The notes below the pieces were generated by a model. That model was not told where the DNA came from. It searched no databases and worked only from the letters and a program-made list of their open reading frames with translations. A stretch of 64,000 bases of DNA from Bugula neritina (lineage: Eukaryota; Animalia; Bryozoa): assembly GCA_964035545.1 (NCBI GenBank), contig OZ037773.1, forward strand, positions 8,151,751-8,215,750, in the 5' to 3' direction. Positions 3,485 through 15,500 of this stretch are shown here, in pieces. Each line of letters begins with the position of its first letter. Position 1 is the first letter of the stretch. A program made the translations under genes and the position numbers.

Positions 3485-6400
3485 TTACACAGGTGCATTT
3501 AGCTTTCTTTGAGGCTGTGAATCCGGCTTTTTGTTCACCATTATTAGGAAAGCTTCTATGAAGTTGTCTACCCATACTTGCATAGATGCTGAATACAAGT
3601 TCACCTAAAAAGTAGATAACACAACTCCCCATGTACCAGTTCACATGACTCATCACATTATATGCAGTCATATAGTCTTAGTAAATACATGGATACATAC
3701 AGCATCACTCATATATGGGTATGTACTTTACAAGAATCAAACCTGCAAAGCAACCAGTGATCTACTTTTACAAAGCAGTTGCAGCAGTCAATTGTAAACC
3801 AAAGTAAAAAAAAGTCTAATAAACAATCTTTAAAGACATGAAAATGCTCCCTAAATAAATAGGATAAAAAAGTTTTAAGCTATCAGATTTGCCTTTTCAC
3901 AAAAAATTATTCTTTAAGTATCCTACTTTTGCATTCAATCATTCCACTGCACAGCAAGTATAAAATGTACATCTTGTCTATAAAAGCATTTAAAAACATT
4001 AAATTGTTATTTGTGATGTAGTAATCAGCAGTATATTATACTAATATAGTTAGTATGAAATTATACTAATAGTTATAATTAAAATTATTTCATCACAAAT
4101 TGGCCACAATTAACCCCGAAGAGTTATGCTCTCCTCACTGAGCTGTTAAAGCTATCTTCATAGCGTATAGCAGTGAAACAGCTGAGAAAAATTTTACAAA
4201 ATTATTGAAATGCAAATGTGAAAACATGGGAGTTGTGTCATCACATGTCAACCATTCATGGCTCGGTGCCTCGACTAGCTACAGTGCTATTGCGCCATAG
4301 GCCCTGTCATTTTGTTTATATTTTCTCAATTAATTTTTTCCCAACTACGACAAAATAAAAAACAAACAAACAAACAAACATACTTGGCCAGCGTCTGTAG
4401 AGTGTCTGCACTGTTTCGACTCCAGGCAAGAAGGTCTATGCTGTGAGTCGACGATGTCAAAGTTGTACAGCAGCGAGAGGTCAGCGTGTAGCATCATTGG
4501 TCCGTTCTCACTCGTAGAGTTCCACTGAGTGGTCCTGTAAGGAGACAAACAGCGTGCTGATACTATAAATAGAATGTAAACTCGCAGTGTGGAAACAGTG
4601 AGCAGAAATGGTTGATAATGGAGCAGTTGAAATAGTGTGGGTGTGTCGAGGTGGGAAGATTCTGTGTGTAACTCTGTGATGGGAACTACTTAGAGACAGA
4701 AATAGAGCAATTAGTTGATATCTACAGCTCTATACATTAGAATATAGATATACTATACTACACTACATTATATGTAATATAATATACTATAATACATTAT
4801 AATATAATACAGTATCGTATAGTGCAGTATATAGTAGTTGGTACAGTGTATAGTATAGTGTAGTGTAGTACAGTATAGCATATTGCATTATAGTACAAAT
4901 AATATACTATAATATACTATGCTATGCTGTACTACACTATACTATACTACACTATACTATACTGTATTACACTATACTATACTGCACTGCACTGCACTGC
5001 ACTGCACTGCACTGCACTGCACTGCACTGCACTGCACTACACTACACTACACTACACTACACTATACAACATATCTGTATTCTCACCCGTTGGTGGGCAC
5101 AGCTATCCAGTTGGGTGTATCAGCCAAACTCTTGTAGTAGTGGTTGTCCAGTGTTAGGGGCGTGTTATCCCATCTCCCTCTGAAACCAGAGTTTTCCTTC
5201 CTACATGCTCCCAGTGAATGTGCCCCTGCAATAGCAATATCCATATGCTATGCTACTCAACACACTCTAGGAAAAGGCAACTTTTAAAAGCTTCCAACTG
5301 GTGACAAATGATAGCAGATTAGATTTCTAGCTACTATTTATACAAGTGTTGGTTGTCTTCTCCTATTATCTGAGATAGTATAGCAAGAAAGTTAGTAATT
5401 TTAGCAAAGAAATATTCCTATATTATATAATTATGATTCAACAATAAAATAATAAGCAATGAGAGGCAACTCTAGCTTATATAGTAGATTATGAAAATTA
5501 CTATAAACAGTCAAAATTGATGGTAAACACAGTGAACAGTTTTAATATGTGTTTGATTGCAGCTGTCTGGATAAAACCAAATATTATTAAAGTTTAGACC
5601 CATAAAAAACAAAATCTGGTTGTAATATTACAATGATTATCTAAAGCCAGTATTGATATATGGAATTTGTCTTCCTTCTTCATATTCTTTTTATTTAGTC
5701 TACTTTCACTAGGGAACATGACAGGATCCACTAACCTAAGAGAGCAATAGCCAACTTTCTCTCCGGTAATCCAAATTCCCTTATCAGAAAGTCTATGCTG
5801 TCTTTGTCATCACCCTACAACCAATCAGAATAGTCGACACAAATTGATATCTTTGTGTAAATTTCATTGTATATTATTAATATCTAAAATTTAAATAATC
5901 GCTATATCTTATAATAGACAAGATATACCACAATGCTCCTCATTGCTACACCTCATAGTAAATTTGCTCACCTTTGGGAACTTATGTGGATTATGATAGT
6001 TGTCAGGATTTGGACAAGTGCTTCTTCCAGGTTGGAAGGCTATAGAGACCACCCCCATGAGATCCTCTACAAATAATATTAGCCAATACACTATACACTA
6101 TATATTACATGCTATACACTATATACTACATGCTATACACTATATATTACATGCTATACACTATATGTCACATGCTACACAGTATACATTATATATTACA
6201 TGCTATACACTATATACTACATGCTATACACTATATATTACATGCTATACACTATATGTCACATGCTATACACTATATATTACAGGCTACACACAATATA
6301 TTACATGCTATACATTATATATTACATGCTATACACTATGTGTCACATGCTATACAGTATACACTATATATTACATGCTATACACTATATACTACATGCT

Positions 6401-8392
6401 ATACACTATATATTACATGCTATACACTACATATTACATGCTATACACTACATATTACATGCTATACACTATATATTATACGCTATACACTATATATTGC
6501 ATGCTATACATTATATACCACATGCTATACATGATATATCACATGCTACACACTATATATAACTGCATACAATACATGATATATTACAGGCTACACACTA
6601 TATATTACATGCTATACATTATATACCACATGCTATACACTACATATTACATGCTAAACACTATATATTACATGCTATACACTATATATTACATGCTATA
6701 CACTATATGTCACATGCTATACACTACATATTACATGCTATACACTACATATTACATGCTATGCACTATATATTATAGGCTATACACTATATATTACATA
6801 CTATATGCATCAGACACCCTCTAATAAAAAACCTACCAGATTTGTTGATAGCAATCTCCACAGCCACTGTCCCCATCAGCACAAAGAAGTCTGCTAGACT
6901 CAGCTCCTGTCCGACATCTGACTGGGCCCAGAGAGCTCGGATAGTGTTGTAAGATGGTTTCAAGGCTACAGAGTAACAAGTCAAGATGTACTCAGACTAC
7001 ATACATAGCTAGACTATAGAGTAACACTGTGAGTTACAGTGACAGAGTATAACTGTGAGTAATAGTAACAGAGTATAACTGTTTGTTACAGTAACAGAGT
7101 ATAACTGTTTGTTGCAGTAGCAGTCACAGTAATAGAGTAAGAGTGTGTTTAATAGTTTAGACTTTAGCATGACATTACAACATAACAACAGAGTAACTAT
7201 GCCCTACAGCTTACATAAAAAAACCATTATAATTCAAATTAAAAATTATGAAATTATGGTATAAAAAATTAATAAAAAAACTAAGCTGGTGTTTAGAGAT
7301 TAAGTCAGCACTAATGTTCATGTATCTGGAAGACTTGAAACCTGTAGCCTGTGGTACCTTTATTATCTATCTCTCGAAAGTTGAGGCACCCATCACATCC
7401 ACCCACACATGTGTGAAATACCAGTTGCAAAAGGTCCGGCAGCCACTCTCTCTAGAAAATATTTTCCGAAAAATTAAAATTTAGTTTTTTTGTATGACTC
7501 ATAACTTTATAAAACATTGATTATAATAACATACAATATGATATAATGATATTATATGATATAAATTAGTGAGATGCATCTACAAAATCATGTTTTATGA
7601 AGTCAATTCGGGAACAAATATATTATTTCATAAGATTTTTTTGAGCAAATTTATTATTCACCCATACTTCAACAACTTTGTAAAGACTTGGCTAATTGTG
7701 AAAATAATAGATAAAAGTTGCATAGAGATAAAATTACAGAGTCAGTTTTTATATTATATTGCCTATTATAGCATTATCATATTTAACCTATATAAAGGCA
7801 ATAGCAGAACCCAAGATCTACAATATGATAGAATATGTTGAAATCATCTGTAGAAGGGTGTTGTGAAATATTTAGATGTGTTGAATATTACTGTGAAGGC
7901 AGTATTAAGATTTGGAATTATAACTTAATCCTTGTCCACTAATCCCAGTACTCATGCATACCAAATACAAGGGTGGCGTGTCACAACATCAGAGTTAGTT
8001 GCTAGCATACACAGGTATGACACACTGTAACCATGAGTCATAATGTGACCACACACGGTTGACCACACACAAAATGACCACACACAGTATGTACACGTAT
8101 TACATACACAGTACACACAAAGTGACAACACACAGTATGTACACGTATTACATACACAGTACACACAAAGTGACAACACACAGTATGTACACTTAGTACA
8201 TAAACAGTAAACACACAGTATACACCACACACAAAGTGACCACACACAGTATGTATTTGTAGTACACACGGCACACACACAGCACACACACAGCACACAC
8301 ACAGCACACACACACACACACAGCACACACAGCACACACAGTACACACACAGCACACACAGTACACACACAGCACACACACAGCACACACAC

Positions 8393-8445
<53 letters not shown>

Positions 8446-8546
8446 CACACACAGCACACACAGCACACACAGTACACACACAGCACACACACAGCACACA
8501 CACAGTACACACACACACACACACACAGCACACACACAGTACACAC

Positions 8547-8601
<55 letters not shown>

Positions 8602-8618
8602 CACACACACACACACAC

Positions 8619-8655
<37 letters not shown>

Positions 8656-8697
8656 CACACACACACACACACACAGCACACACACACACACACACAC

Positions 8698-8762
<65 letters not shown>

Positions 8763-10461
8763 ACACACTCACACAGTCATTACACACTACAACCATGACT
8801 CATGCTGTGATCACTTACGTAATCAAACATAGTGACCACACACATAGCGATCACACACCGTGACAATGTCTGATACAGTGACCACACACAGCGATGATGA
8901 CTCACATCCTGAATGATGAAGTCATGAGCAAACTTCTTCAGCTCAGCTATCTTTTCAGGAGTGAGGGAGGGGCCCTGACCAACCCCCTCATCTCTACCAG
9001 TATTTCCTGGACGCTGATCCTTGAAACCTGAAGGAAATTGCTGTGAAGTCTGCTGTCTGCCTCTTCCAAAGAAGTTATCGAAGTTAGGCTGCCTTCCTGA
9101 TGGGCTGCCACCTTGAACCTGCGGTCTGAAGCTGCTTGGAGCTCCGTTAGCCGTCTTATCAAACATCCTGCTAAATGCGTCAAAGTTAGAGTCTAGGAAG
9201 TTACTGTTGCTCTCTGGGACAGCGGCAGTCTGTCTCTCCAGACCACTGTCAGCTTCTCTGAATGTGTTCTGAACATCCTTCTCAACGTTGAAAAAATTGC
9301 TGGGAAACTGAAAACTGAGAATAAATGCTGCCATTACTCACATAGCATATAGTAGCAAAACACTATAAACTTGTGTAAGTTTTTATAATAACTAACACAA
9401 AATGTACGGATGTTTTGAAGGTCATGCACTTTGTGGACATTTTAGATGTATAAGTTTAGGAGAAAACAGCTGTGATCTATTGAGTAGCTATTGCTGGTAG
9501 TTGCACAACTAAAAAGTCATCATTTGGTGCATATAGGAAAGCATTAAGCCTAGTGACAATATTATAAAAGCAGAACCTAAATTCAGTAGACAGTATTGAG
9601 AAAGTAGTTCTTGTCTCAATGAGGGTGTAAACTCTGCTTTTCACCAAAGTTTAAATACCATTATGGTTGTACGAACAACCAGAGAGGCTAGGTGGAGTGA
9701 GAGTAAGGCAGTATGTAAAATAAGTAGGTCGTATAGAGAAACAGCTCCAGTAATAAGAGGGAGTTGTCTGACCATTAGATTTGAGTTTAAATGTTAGGCT
9801 TTTATAGGCAATCAAAGCTAAAGGCTTAGTATATTTGTCCAAACATTCTATGTAACTACATGGACATGTCATATTATGTTATATTATAATTTACATGTAG
9901 CTACATGTACATATTGCATTATATTTTATATATAGCTACATAGTATATTATATTATATTATTCAAGGCATAGTAATACTGTTACAACTGTAGTCTAATAT
10001 ATTAACTCATAGTATAACAAGACACTCACTTTTGTGCTCCGATAGCAGAAACTAACACATGCAGCACTACAGCAAATCCTTGTATCTTTGAGATCTAAAA
10101 CAGTAATATCTGAATAAAAAAACTATATCAGGTTATAAAAACATCAATTTTAAGTCTAACATTACATTATTTATTCAAGTAATTGCATGTCATAAATAGC
10201 ATTATGATGCTTAAAATGAAATAGTTTCCTCTACGTTTATGCAGAAGCAGGCAGTCTCCTTTAACTGTATGCATGTAGACTGCTTAGTTTGGCAGTGTGC
10301 AAAGGACACTTCTCCAACTTCAAGATGCTGTATTTCAGTCCTTGTTTTTAAAATGCTAACTCCACAGTTTTAATGCCACCTTAACAAAACTCTTTCCTAA
10401 AGAAGCTATCAACAATCTGCAAGGTTTTTCCGTACAATTTGTAATATAGCCTTACCTCCAT
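3485..10461 (-). CDS. Secreted heme peroxidase, peroxidase-catalase superfamily (ascorbate peroxidase-like), ~428 aa; exons 10456-10461, 10030-10094, 8906-9314, 7358-7451, 6837-6965, 5972-6066, 5736-5814, 5087-5225, 4384-4534, 3485-3604
   Basis: Phase-consistent GT-AG exons. Signal peptide MEISKIQGFAVVLHVLVSAIGAQ; distal helix LLQLVFHTCVGGCDGC..DNKAL; LSLADFFVLMG; FQPGR; proximal ALLGAHSLG..NSGFRGRW..LDNHYYK; MMLHADLSL; C-terminal helix VNLYSASMQVWVDNFIEAFLIM. Confidence 0.92.
4920..5066. repeat. Pentamer microsatellite (ACTAT/ACTGC/ACTAC)n
   Basis: Direct inspection; in a peroxidase intron. Confidence 0.95.
6085..6805. repeat. 21-bp minisatellite (CATGCTATACACTATATATTA)
   Basis: >30 units filling almost the whole of peroxidase intron 5; source of the spurious HAIHYIL ORFs. 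Confidence 0.95.
8045..8880. repeat. ~43-bp tandem units plus an interrupted (CA)n array
   Basis: CACACAGTATGTACACGTATTACATACACAGTACACACAAAGTGACAA-type units followed by a CA/CAG array. Confidence 0.9.
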
Positions 10462-12580: not shown

Positions 12581-15500
12581 CTAGCTGTCAGCATCAGGAG
12601 GTGACTGTTGGAACTTTGCCAACCTCCGTCTTCTTACTTCCTCCTGGTCGGACAGAGGTGACTTGTGGGTGCTGTCGGAGAGAGATGACGAGCTTGCGGC
12701 AGCTTCTGTAGAATAGAAAAAAGTCAGCAATCATTGAATATTCTGCAAAACATGAATCGCTTAGAAGTAAACACTTTAGCTACAGGAAATAGGTAGGTGA
12801 TTCCGATGACATAAAACTTTACTTCATATCTTAAAGGAAAACTTTGGTCTTAGAATCTACTAGCACACTAAGGCTGTGGTATTCAAGATTACTAAAAATA
12901 GAATGGAGCCATCAGATTTATTTAATTAAATTCCTGAGAATTTTTCCTGCAATGTAAAAAACTCCTCCTATTAGTGTTGTTATTAGGGACACACCTACAT
13001 GCCAGAATGAAAGTGTGTCGAAATGTCTCGGTCCAGCACAAAAAGAGCTGATCACCTTTCTAAAGCCTAGCCGTCGCTATAGCAACTATGCAGACATAAG
13101 AAAACTAGCATGGCGCCATGTAGAAGATAGGAGAGATGCAAGCAGCAATACTGGCAGAGTTAGAACTGTTGATTTATGAGTAGAAAGAGAGCAGTTGGCA
13201 GGTGATTTAGAGATCAAACTTGGCAATGATGGACTTCAAAGATCTCTTCAGATAACATCTTCTAAAGGCAGCTTGAGCCACGGCTAGTCACGTACACTAG
13301 GAAGGGGTGTGTATTCTACGCTCCTCTAAACTTATGTTATGGTATGTATTAAGCTAAATATTTATTTATTCTGTCATGTTGTAAGCTGATTATAGCGTGT
13401 TGCCCATTCCATCATTCACTGTCACCATAACAGATAACAGAGTTATAGAAACTACTAGGCTGTTTATAAACTTTTATTCACTTGTCTCTTAGCTTCAAAA
13501 TACAAATCACTCCAACAGTAGATCATTTACACTGCCTGAACACCCTAAGCACATAACTGTAGACTGTATATAAAAACAACCTCCTTCGGGGGGGAGCATG
13601 CACACTTTGTTATAAAATTGCAGATAAAATTTACCAAAAAATACAAGAAATACATTCAGTGATTTTTAAAATAAAATTATTGATTTTTAAAATAAAATTA
13701 TTGATTTTTGTTATTAATATCACAACATTATGTACAATTATTACAAGTGTTATTGGTACTGTTTTTACAGTTTTAATAATACTTGTTATTATTATTAACG
13801 TTGTGATGGTTATTGATAATTTAATGGCATACAGTTGTACACCTTAACATATCTATCAAGGTGGTAAATAGAGCAAGGTTGCTAGTGAGTCAGGAGGCAT
13901 ATGGGGGGGGGGGGGGGGGCCAGAGAAGTCACATTCTAGTATTTTAAGGCTCGCCTTGTCAAGAGATTAATATAAAAATGTTTTTAAATTTTAATTCATA
14001 GCCTGTGACACCCACTCAATATTTTATAGTGGATTAGCTGTAATCTATAGTTTAAGTACACTTAGCACTGGAGAAGCGAGGAAGGGGCCTACCACTCCCT
14101 CACCCCACCTGAAAGTTTATTAGAAAAGCACTCAACTCAGCCCACGTACAGATCATCTCACCTGGTATAGGATTAGATGTGCTTGAGAAAGGAGTGGTCT
14201 TAGGCCGAGTTCCAAGTAGCTCTGCATCAGATTTAGTAGGGGTGGGCAGTGTAGCACTCGCAATACCAGCTGATAATGTTTCTGCTTCAGCTGCTAAAAT
14301 TTTATACCAATAAATAGAAAAATAAATCATTTCCCATCCTAACTGTTGCTTATCTCAACAAGTAATACAAAACATTAAATCTCACTAAAAGACGTGTACA
14401 GTAGCTAAGAGCATACGTAGTGGGAATTTTGTGATAAAGCTCTATTCTAGTCAGTTTTCTAACCTTTTTATAAACATAAAATCAAAAGTTTTGACATTTT
14501 GAATGGAGAAAATAAACTTATTTCAAGTTCAGTTTTTTTATCTGTCCTAAACAAAGATGGTTAGTTAGTCATGGGCTAAAGCATGTGGAGAAATCAATAG
14601 TGAAGAAACCGAGTGCTTTCAGCTCATGTGAAGAGCATGGCTGCAAGAAGTAGCAACAAACTGAAGCAGTGAACAGAGAACGTCTGAGATACCTGTTTCT
14701 GGTGAATGGGTTGGCGGACTACTAGATGCTGACGGCATATTCTGATTGGTTGCTTTAAAATGCTGCCGAGAAGCTTGCAATGCTGACACAACCTGCAAAT
14801 ACACAAGGGCTAGAGTGAGTCTAATGCAAGCTGAGCAACAACTTACATGCATCTGATTACTCTCAGCTTTCAAACAGAAGACTGACAGCGACTGAGATAC
14901 GGCAGCGACTAAGGCACGCTGACAGAAGCTGCAGGTGGTTAGAGACTTCAGCAACTGGATAAACCAGCAGTCGGGCTTCAAGCTACCAACAAAATAACTT
15001 GTATTTGGGAAAACACCAAAAAAGTACACAGACAAGATTTACTCAGTGAGAAGACACTTCTACAGACTCAACAGAGACGCCCCTAGGCAGCAGTAGTGAT
15101 GACTCACGGTGGTATACTGATGCATCTGCTCCACGGCGCTGTCTAGTAGTGTCTGTATATCCCGTAACCAGAGTATCCGCGCCTCCATAGCCTCTCTTTC
15201 ATCTTTCTCCATTTGCTGCAGCTGTTCGTCAGTCAACTGCTGTATATTAGCTGTTGGCATAGGAGGAGGGGGCATCGCTGTATAAGAGACCACAGGCTAT
15301 AACAACTACAAGCATCTATATTATACACTGCATTATATTACCAGTTGGAGTTGTATGCTCTCTTTAAAAACCTCACAACAGAAGATACCCGATTAGGTAA
15401 ACAAAAAACTCTTAAACTCAGCTTAACAGAATAGAATTGAAGTAGCCATCCAAGCACAGTAACAAAACGCTGTGAGAAGAAATAGGTCAAACTTAACAGA

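Follow-up and report, generated by a model that had tools for sequence, protein, structure and literature searches.

We analysed a 64,000-nucleotide stretch of the genome of the bryozoan Bugula neritina (assembly GCA_964035545.1, contig OZ037773.1, positions 8,151,751 to 8,215,750 of the forward strand), called the window below, whose own numbering is used for all positions unless stated otherwise. The minus strand of the window carries a 10-exon gene (10461 to 3485; 428 amino acids) that would encode a secreted haem b peroxidase-fold protein with glutamine at the position of the catalytic distal arginine. An original prediction, made from the letters of the window, had treated this Gln as an anomaly of the one gene; that view did not survive comparison with relatives, since the window gene is one member of a clade and 11 paralogues are Gln-type. 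The Gln appears to be the ancestral state of a bryozoan gene clade, to have arisen once before Bugula and Watersipora split, and to have been kept under purifying selection, with one return to Arg. On balance, we think it probable that the whole is best explained by a peroxidase-fold protein with an inherited Gln and a slower or retuned reactivity towards peroxide.

The Gln lies in exon 4, which occupies 7358 to 7451 on the minus strand between a ttttctag acceptor and a gtacca donor and whose reverse complement translates to REWLPDLLQLVFHTCVGGCDGCLNFREIDNK; the plus-strand frame of the same interval contains a stop and is not open. Three features of the exon form the distal side of the putative haem pocket:

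7425 to 7427, minus strand: codon CAA, Gln169 in the numbering of the 428-amino-acid model, at the distal-Arg position by alignment; unchanged in the contigs of sequencing runs X1, X2 and X3

7407 to 7418, minus strand: Phe172-His173-Thr174-Cys175, that is, the distal Phe, the catalytic distal His, Thr replacing the post-His Asp, and the first Cys of the loop

7362 to 7364, minus strand: distal Asn190 of the DNK motif, an invariant column (N143 in alignment A2, N156 in alignment A4)

HMMER paired the segment dllqlvfhtc with SLIRLHFHDC of the banyan peroxidase 4cuo, a class III enzyme, an alignment in which Gln takes the place of the distal Arg, and Phe and His fall on the distal Phe/Trp and the distal His. 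Together with the reverse-complement translation, this confirmed the exon as originally read and CAA as Gln at the distal-Arg position, which is Arg38 of ascorbate peroxidase (APX) and horseradish peroxidase (HRP) and Arg48 of cytochrome c peroxidase (CcP). His173 aligns with H42, and with His173-Thr174 in register, the Thr reported after the distal His also stands. Members of the superfamily are recognised by a distal Arg, rarely Lys, three residues before Phe/Trp-His; the window gene has Gln169 there. On the proximal side, His295 and Trp311 are in register with APX H163 and W179 (8djr, E 6.8e-8), Asp357 lies in MMLHAD, which through the orthologue P0018 aligns with MMLPTD of CcP, and Asn304 sits at the position of APX Arg172. 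The distal His, distal Asn and proximal His, Trp and Asp, which had been described as intact, are invariant across the Gln-type proteins (alignments A2 and A4), and the three proximal residues align with APX and CcP. The model has seven Cys (175, 179, 182, 252, 300, 375 and 381), and six Cys are conserved across the family.

In the family alignment, the column of Gln169 holds Arg in all 22 Arg-type relatives, in five of five classic APX-like proteins and in five of five revertants, and it is the only column that cleanly splits the Gln clade from its Arg-type relatives. The same alignment contains no compensating basic residue conserved in the Gln clade; the Lys of an FPKG motif varies among paralogues. 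We found no mutually exclusive, Arg-encoding copy of the distal exon within the window, and an alternative Arg-containing exon had been named beforehand as something that would overturn the reading.

Searches of the 216-Mb genome with the distal and proximal exons returned about 20 loci. Q-x-x-F-H is present in 11 genes (the window gene and L004-L013), including the paralogue L005, 156 kb from the window gene, and R-x-x-F-H-D-C in about 11 others, for roughly 22 paralogues. An exhaustive profile search of 1.84 billion representatives yielded 1,746 relatives. The full-length relatives with Gln are Watersipora subatra P0018, P0020, P0078 and P0151, B. neritina P0009 and the unlabelled P0021; P0009 (KAF6032613.1) shares ~89-97% amino acid identity with L004 in the exon cores, and we take the genome analysed to be that of a bugulid cheilostome near to the published B. 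neritina isolate without being identical to it. Named relatives are from the bryozoans W. subatra and B. neritina and, more distantly, from the brachiopod Lingula. The Gln thus occurs in at least two bryozoan genera among the matches listed, and word-index searches gave few proteins and not the window's own product. Whether orthologues and paralogues share the residue had been posed as a check, and they do: the 11 paralogues and at least four Watersipora genes carry it.

We placed these genes on a careful maximum-likelihood tree, for which the Arg/Gln residue itself had been masked. All bryozoan Gln genes fell in one clade of 22 rows (support 96/92) that has Bugula-Watersipora orthologue pairs inside it, and the window gene grouped with P0018 and P0021 (100/98). 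Five Watersipora Arg genes are nested deep in the Gln clade (100/98 and 98/94) as sister to the Gln-type Bugula gene L005. In 200 of 200 bootstrap trees exactly three changes were needed: Gln was gained at the root of the clade, lost once by reversion, and gained independently in P0171. The reverted Arg is encoded by CGA and AGA, the former one transition away from CAA. The tree indicates a single origin of Gln before the Bugula/Watersipora split. On this tree Gln is ancestral in a clade that counts at least 17 bryozoan genes from two genera, and the one return to Arg took place in a tandem subclade of Watersipora. By cheilostome history, that split likely dates back some 100 million years. 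The suggestion that this might be a new subfamily has gained from these results, as it has from the purifying selection described below. Only a subclade has Thr after the distal His; basal Gln-type genes keep Asp.

The Watersipora revertants L027 and L028 lie at 58.00-58.11 Mb of OY755162.1, and L026 lies at 57.34 Mb; the revertant genes are ~0.7 Mb from the window gene's orthologue on the same Watersipora chromosome. Their distal loop is longer by two inserted residues (CVGSTGCDGC or CVGNTGCDGC). P0025 (XP_067938850.1) is one of the Watersipora revertants. P0171 (L025, from a Logan contig of SRR13370263) is an independent Gln-type protein, TQLVFHDCVGGCDGC, encoded at 63% G+C without introns. 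Besides a signal peptide, it has extra residues inserted behind the proximal His, a long tail rich in Pro, Thr and Ser and a hydrophobic C terminus, and from these features it looks like a surface-anchored protist enzyme. None of the papers searched mentions the identifiers of the runs and samples behind P0171 and P0021.

We then compared the window with contigs from four sequencing runs. The X1 contig had no differences from the window over 6733-7500. The contigs of X2 and X3, 93 to 97% identical in DNA with introns included, span 7425-7427 with their listed differences elsewhere; their DNA is from a divergent haplotype or a sibling lineage. The contig of X5, from an independent 2016 study, also spans the codon, and two of its four differences are listed. 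CAA is thus unchanged in the X1, X2 and X3 contigs, which answers the proposal to confirm the codon in reads. Related DNA occurs in 2016 "symbiont metagenome" runs. In intron 7, 122 bp (window 5287-5410) are missing from the X2, X3 and X5 contigs and the X1 contig across the site shows no such joint, pointing to an indel difference between lineages.

Relative to the 93-97%-identical relatives (contigs of three further runs), the exonic differences among those listed comprise 18 synonymous and 4 non-synonymous changes (binomial p = 4e-8 against 25% expected), with an estimated, approximate omega of ~0.07. A ratio of non-synonymous to synonymous rates below 1 had been suggested as a check, and this estimate agrees with it. 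The Gln codon is CAA in 2 genes and CAG in 10; with both codons in use, the amino acid has been kept through synonymous turnover. Branch lengths of the Gln-type genes on the tree are not longer than those of their Arg-type relatives. These comparisons argue that the Gln clade is under purifying selection.

The possibility that the Gln is an assembly error, a rare allele or part of a neutrally drifting pseudogene could draw on the fact that X1 may be the assembly's own sample and that no RNA run was found. It is contradicted by the reads (the codon is unchanged in X2 and X3 and spanned by X5), by a frame open over 10 exons, by the 18 synonymous against 4 non-synonymous differences and by the same Gln in orthologues of another genus. 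We consider artefact and decay excluded, with a negligible probability left to them.

The gene model has an open frame throughout and gt..ag at all introns, which upholds the uninterrupted 10-exon frame proposed earlier, and its architecture matches that of the Watersipora orthologue. Its exons are as follows:

10456 to 10461, minus strand: exon 1, ATGGAG (Met-Glu), then a gtaagg donor; corresponds to the first exon of the Watersipora orthologue (12 nt, MGYQ) and is proposed from this homology of architecture

10030 to 10094, minus strand: exon 2, 65 nt, predicted signal peptide ISKIQGFAVVLHVLVSAIGAQ, phase 0 at the start and phase 2 at the end, gtgagt donor; top candidate of a phase-constrained scan

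8906 to 9314, minus strand: exon 3, 409 nt, low-complexity F/Q/S/N/G/R-rich linker and then the start of the peroxidase domain (…KKFAHDFIIQD); acceptor ctcag|T

7358 to 7451, minus strand: exon 4, 94 nt, distal haem-pocket helix B and Cys-rich loop; 94 nt in the orthologue too

6837 to 6965, minus strand: exon 5, 129 nt

5972 to 6066, minus strand: exon 6, 95 nt, GRSTC motif with the conserved Cys252

5736 to 5814, minus strand: exon 7, 79 nt; 79 nt in the orthologue too

5087 to 5225, minus strand: exon 8, 139 nt, His295 (5218-5220), Asn304 (5191-5193) and Trp311 (5170-5172); 139 nt in the orthologue too

4384 to 4534, minus strand: exon 9, 151 nt, MMLHAD with Asp357 (4480-4482) and the PSC…QC Cys pair

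3485 to 3604, minus strand: exon 10, 120 nt, ending in TAA

Among full-length proteins, the nearest relative is W. subatra XP_067939208.1 (P0018), to which the window protein is 53% identical (E 1e-114). Mapped onto its own genomic locus, P0018 also has 10 exons: exon 1 measures 12 nt, exon 2 (62 nt, ending in phase 2) encodes the signal peptide, and exon 3 is long and of low complexity. Exons 4 to 10 measure 94/94, 126/129, 98/95, 79/79, 139/139, 148/151 and 90/120 nt (orthologue/window), and their phases agree. P0018 has a clear signal peptide followed by FQFPQNQF, and the counterpart FQFPSNFF stands at the start of window exon 3. We place exons 1 and 2 of the window gene by this conserved architecture. 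The secretion proposed earlier is supported by the putative signal-peptide exon at 10094-10030 and its counterpart in the orthologue. A first model of eight exons, from an ATG at 9334 to the TAA at 3485, was rejected: this ATG lies in the pyrimidine-rich acceptor region, and in the orthologue FQFP is preceded by a signal peptide, for which two exons further upstream provide the code. The open reading frame is not extendable beyond ATG 9334, since a TGA stands in frame two codons before it. Transcript-like evidence was found only for relatives (P0021 and P0171, on short intron-free contigs).

The window is eukaryotic in composition (35% G+C, microsatellites, short exons). A long imperfect (CA)n/(TG)n microsatellite lies in intron 3 (8041-8799), and a long (GA)n/(TC)n run lies downstream of the gene (1599-1980). 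Two intronic stretches, 4155-4422 and 6031-6700, had contig depths in the thousands in all four runs, which identifies them as high-copy repeats of the B. neritina genome.

PF00141 scored 13.8 and 12.6 bits on single exons, below its cut-off of 27, and a PF00141 search of the genome did not pick up the window gene, whose exons are too short for it. The profile tests on full-length proteins and the fold tests below were run on relatives or on the orthologue P0018, to which the window protein is linked by its 53% identity. PF00141 was passed by seven of seven full-length Gln-type relatives, with a best E of 6.8e-27. An AlphaFold2 (AF2) model of P0018 residues 170-453 had a predicted local distance difference test score (pLDDT) of 94.1 and a predicted template modelling score (pTM) of 0.92. 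Foldseek matched this model to 5al9, 3riv and 1ccp (Leishmania major peroxidase and CcP) with a probability of 1.0 and template modelling (TM) scores of 0.70 to 0.78. The best Protein Data Bank (PDB) sequence matches of the P0018 domain were CcP and APX (E 3.5e-14), and the ESM Atlas gave generic PF00141 clusters only. Read from the modelled orthologue, the window protein belongs to the peroxidase-catalase superfamily (PF00141) with the all-alpha fold of classes I to III. As judged from its motifs it is a mosaic, in which a class I-like proximal half is combined with a class-III-like Cys-rich distal loop, a signal peptide and an F/Q/S/N/G/R-rich linker of ~110 residues. The earlier term "APX-like" suits the proximal half but does not suit the distal side, where the loop is of the class-III-like, Cys-rich kind and the distal Trp is Phe, nor the Arg172 position, which is Asn. 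Low-complexity linkers differ among paralogues and orthologues, and we can only speculate that they tether the proteins to the extracellular matrix.

Haem binding, catalysis, substrate and location are, for the window protein, predicted properties. Haem b would be held by His295, backed by Asp357 and Trp311. Peroxide would be deprotonated by His173 as the acid-base catalyst, oriented by Asn190; in the peroxidase-catalase superfamily, the distal Asn hydrogen-bonds the distal His. The guanidinium of the distal Arg normally stabilises the leaving hydroxide and the ferryl oxygen. In the window protein the neutral amide of Gln169 would hydrogen-bond the distal oxygen instead, and because an amide replaces the guanidinium, O-O heterolysis and ferryl stabilisation would be weaker and anion binding lower. 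Variants of HRP Arg38 and CcP Arg48 imply that compound I formation would be slowed by orders of magnitude and not abolished. The product would be an extracellular peroxidase with slower or retuned peroxide reactivity. Ascorbate would not be used through the canonical site, where Arg172 is Asn; matrix or cuticle substrates are probable, with the enzyme presumably tethered by its low-complexity N-terminal linker.

A protein that has lost turnover and keeps fold and haem ligation for binding, transport, sensing or a matrix role would fit the absence of the catalytic Arg, the additional absence of the post-His Asp in the window gene's subclade, the long low-complexity N-terminal region typical of matrix proteins, and the impairment of engineered distal-Arg mutants. 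The distal His and Asn, however, matter for catalysis and not for haem binding, and they are invariant across the Gln-type proteins. The estimated omega of ~0.07 and the Gln-type branches, no longer than the Arg-type ones, also speak against such a pseudo-peroxidase, and a reversion to Arg that was fixed and then duplicated implies a pocket still under functional selection. We regard a non-catalytic haem protein as quite unlikely. The carrier, sensor or structural protein offered by the original prediction loses ground with it: conservation of the His, its Asn partner and the Gln together makes retained catalysis appear the likelier outcome.

A further rival reading has the His/Gln pair retuned to another oxidant or reaction (organic or lipid hydroperoxides, halides, or chemistry of the oxidase or peroxygenase type), with the Gln clade as a distinct class. 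Gln kept through synonymous turnover in at least 12 genes suggests that it is required and not just tolerated, the clade has grown to 11 genes or more, the canonical ascorbate site is missing, and a His/Gln distal pair works in the unrelated cyclooxygenase site, by analogy only. Against this, every substrate named is a candidate, and no other clade-specific pocket change accompanies the change from Arg to Gln. Watersipora moreover returned to Arg with little other change but the two-residue loop insertion, as if the two states were functionally close. We therefore think new chemistry of this kind unlikely. The broader proposal, that the Gln-type genes form a functionally distinct and undescribed class of the superfamily with another reaction or oxidant (organic hydroperoxides, halides, or oxidase cross-linking of cuticle or adhesive), we put forward tentatively, as a possibility short of a favoured view. 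If it were true, the Watersipora Gln-to-Arg revertants would be a natural switch between two chemistries.

Several points weigh against the peroxidase with inherited Gln and slowed or retuned reactivity that we favour. Engineered loss of the HRP distal Arg cuts compound I formation by about three orders of magnitude, so the window protein may have very little activity. Some basic side chain that is not conserved, for example the Lys of the FPKG loop, might reach the pocket. X1, the sole run with most of the stretch, may be from the assembly's source sample. No RNA run holding the window gene was found; the four runs compared gave DNA-like contigs that include introns, and expression and the two 5' exons are supported by homology. 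Finally, the His-Arg pair is stated to be common to every functional peroxidase that the superfamily contains (Zamocky et al. 2014, PMC4232752).

Genes of two unrelated superfamilies of haem peroxidases lie close together here. At least five genes for animal-type haem peroxidases (PF03098, peroxidase-cyclooxygenase superfamily) form a tandem array at C9:8063658-8137279 on the minus strand; the array ends ~14.5 kb before the start of the window and is on the same strand as the PF00141 gene. Upstream of the peroxidase gene, at ~14100-15300 on the minus strand, another gene shows open frames, among them …TDEQLQQMEKDEREAMEARILWLRDIQTLL… and a stretch rich in Pro. Arg-type paralogues also occur in tandem arrays, with at least five genes at C7:3805805-3825873 and two near-identical genes at C7:13778901-13793454, and one of these genes has Gly after the distal His (RLAFHGC). 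The public proteins P0001 (2731 amino acids), P0003, P0004 (1501 amino acids), P0007 and P0013 (599 amino acids) contain two to four matched stretches of the peroxidase domain in tandem; they are true multi-domain enzymes, or else tandem arrays whose gene models were fused.

In textbooks, the "push-pull" machinery of these haem peroxidases is the distal His-Arg pair. Here an entire clade of animal genes has been kept without the distal Arg since before two genera split, with one lineage back to Arg. Matched natural Gln and Arg proteins offer a measure of the real contribution of the Arg. The clade also suggests that bryozoans, which matter as fouling organisms and as the source of the bryostatins, have an extracellular oxidative system that is still unexplored. 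Relatives from Watersipora and B. neritina are already public as automatic annotations, and the secreted metazoan clade is already known. The distal His-Arg pair was used as an inclusion criterion in a major phylogenetic study, which dropped sequences without a distal Arg or Lys and described no Gln variant (Zamocky et al. 2014, PMC4232752). In the literature we found no description of a natural distal Arg-to-Gln lineage and none of bryozoan enzymes of this type; "mantle peroxidase", which bryozoans are reported to lack, seems to be another gene (PMC9484238).

Among known peroxidases, the cytosolic APX of plants (class I, EC 1.11.1.11; 8djr, 1apx, 1oaf) has the same proximal HSLG…SGF-x-G-x-W…LDN-x-YY pattern, and the Asp of its cation loop is kept. 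The window protein differs in having Gln for R38, Phe for W41 and Asn for R172. APX is intracellular, without signal peptide or structural disulfides, whereas the window protein is predicted to be secreted and has seven Cys and a 110-residue linker. Arg172 of APX binds ascorbate at the gamma-haem edge. A single paralogue has Arg as the equivalent residue; elsewhere among the paralogues it is N, I, V, D, S, A or E. Because Asn stands in place of this ascorbate-binding Arg, the window protein is, as far as its sequence tells, not a true APX. The RefSeq label "putative ascorbate peroxidase" is unsupported for the same reason, given the variability of the position across the family, and is probably wrong for the Gln-type proteins.

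CcP (1ccp) and the L. major peroxidase (3riv, 5al9), of class I or hybrid A, share the MML-x-x-D proximal motif seen in CcP but keep Arg48 and the distal Trp, are intracellular or mitochondrial and lack the Cys-rich distal loop. The class III plant peroxidases (HRP, 4cuo) are secretory too and have a similar distal motif, L-H-F-H-D-C-F-V-N-G-C-D-G-S. Their distal calcium loop follows the pattern F-H-D-C-F-V-x-G-C-D-x-S. The loop of the window protein, F-H-T-C-V-G-G-C-D-G-C, is similar but one residue shorter, with Thr for Asp and Cys for Ser, and its proximal side resembles APX and CcP instead. The disulfides of HRP are C11-C91, C44-C49, C97-C301 and C177-C209. The Cys positions of the window protein are unable to form the four class III disulfides, with none in the N-terminal helix or at the C terminus.

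A secreted "metazoan ascorbate peroxidase" clade, comprising sponge AqAPx, sea-louse CaroAPx1 and an APX of Hydra viridis, has been described (Zamocky et al. 2014, PMC4232752). Like its members, the window protein is an animal-encoded PF00141 protein with a predicted signal peptide; unlike them, it has Gln as the distal Arg equivalent. On our tree the bryozoan genes and other animal sequences, such as those of Lingula, branch apart from the classic APX-like proteins (100/99), and the window protein has the distal loop FH-x-C-V-G-G-C-D-G-C in common with Arg-type animal relatives. A fungal hybrid B peroxidase of Sclerotinia sclerotiorum has Lys-X-X-Tyr-His (Zamocky et al. 2014, PMC4232752); that Lys keeps the positive charge, whereas Gln does not, and it is a single protein as opposed to an expanded clade.

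The peroxidase site of cyclooxygenase offers a working distal His/Gln pair over haem b, in an unrelated fold and superfamily and thus as an analogy only. Kinetically, that site prefers organic or lipid hydroperoxides. Its residues are His207 and Gln203 of prostaglandin H synthase (PMC6165217). The closest parallels at the position itself are engineered variants, CcP Arg48 variants (PDB 6ccp, 7ccp and 1dj1) and HRP Arg38Leu, which have no positive charge there. The Arg38Leu variant was reportedly studied by Rodriguez-Lopez and colleagues in 1996. These are laboratory mutants in a pocket adapted to Arg, whereas the bryozoan Gln is natural and appears to be ancient, conserved and duplicated, with natural revertants alongside it.

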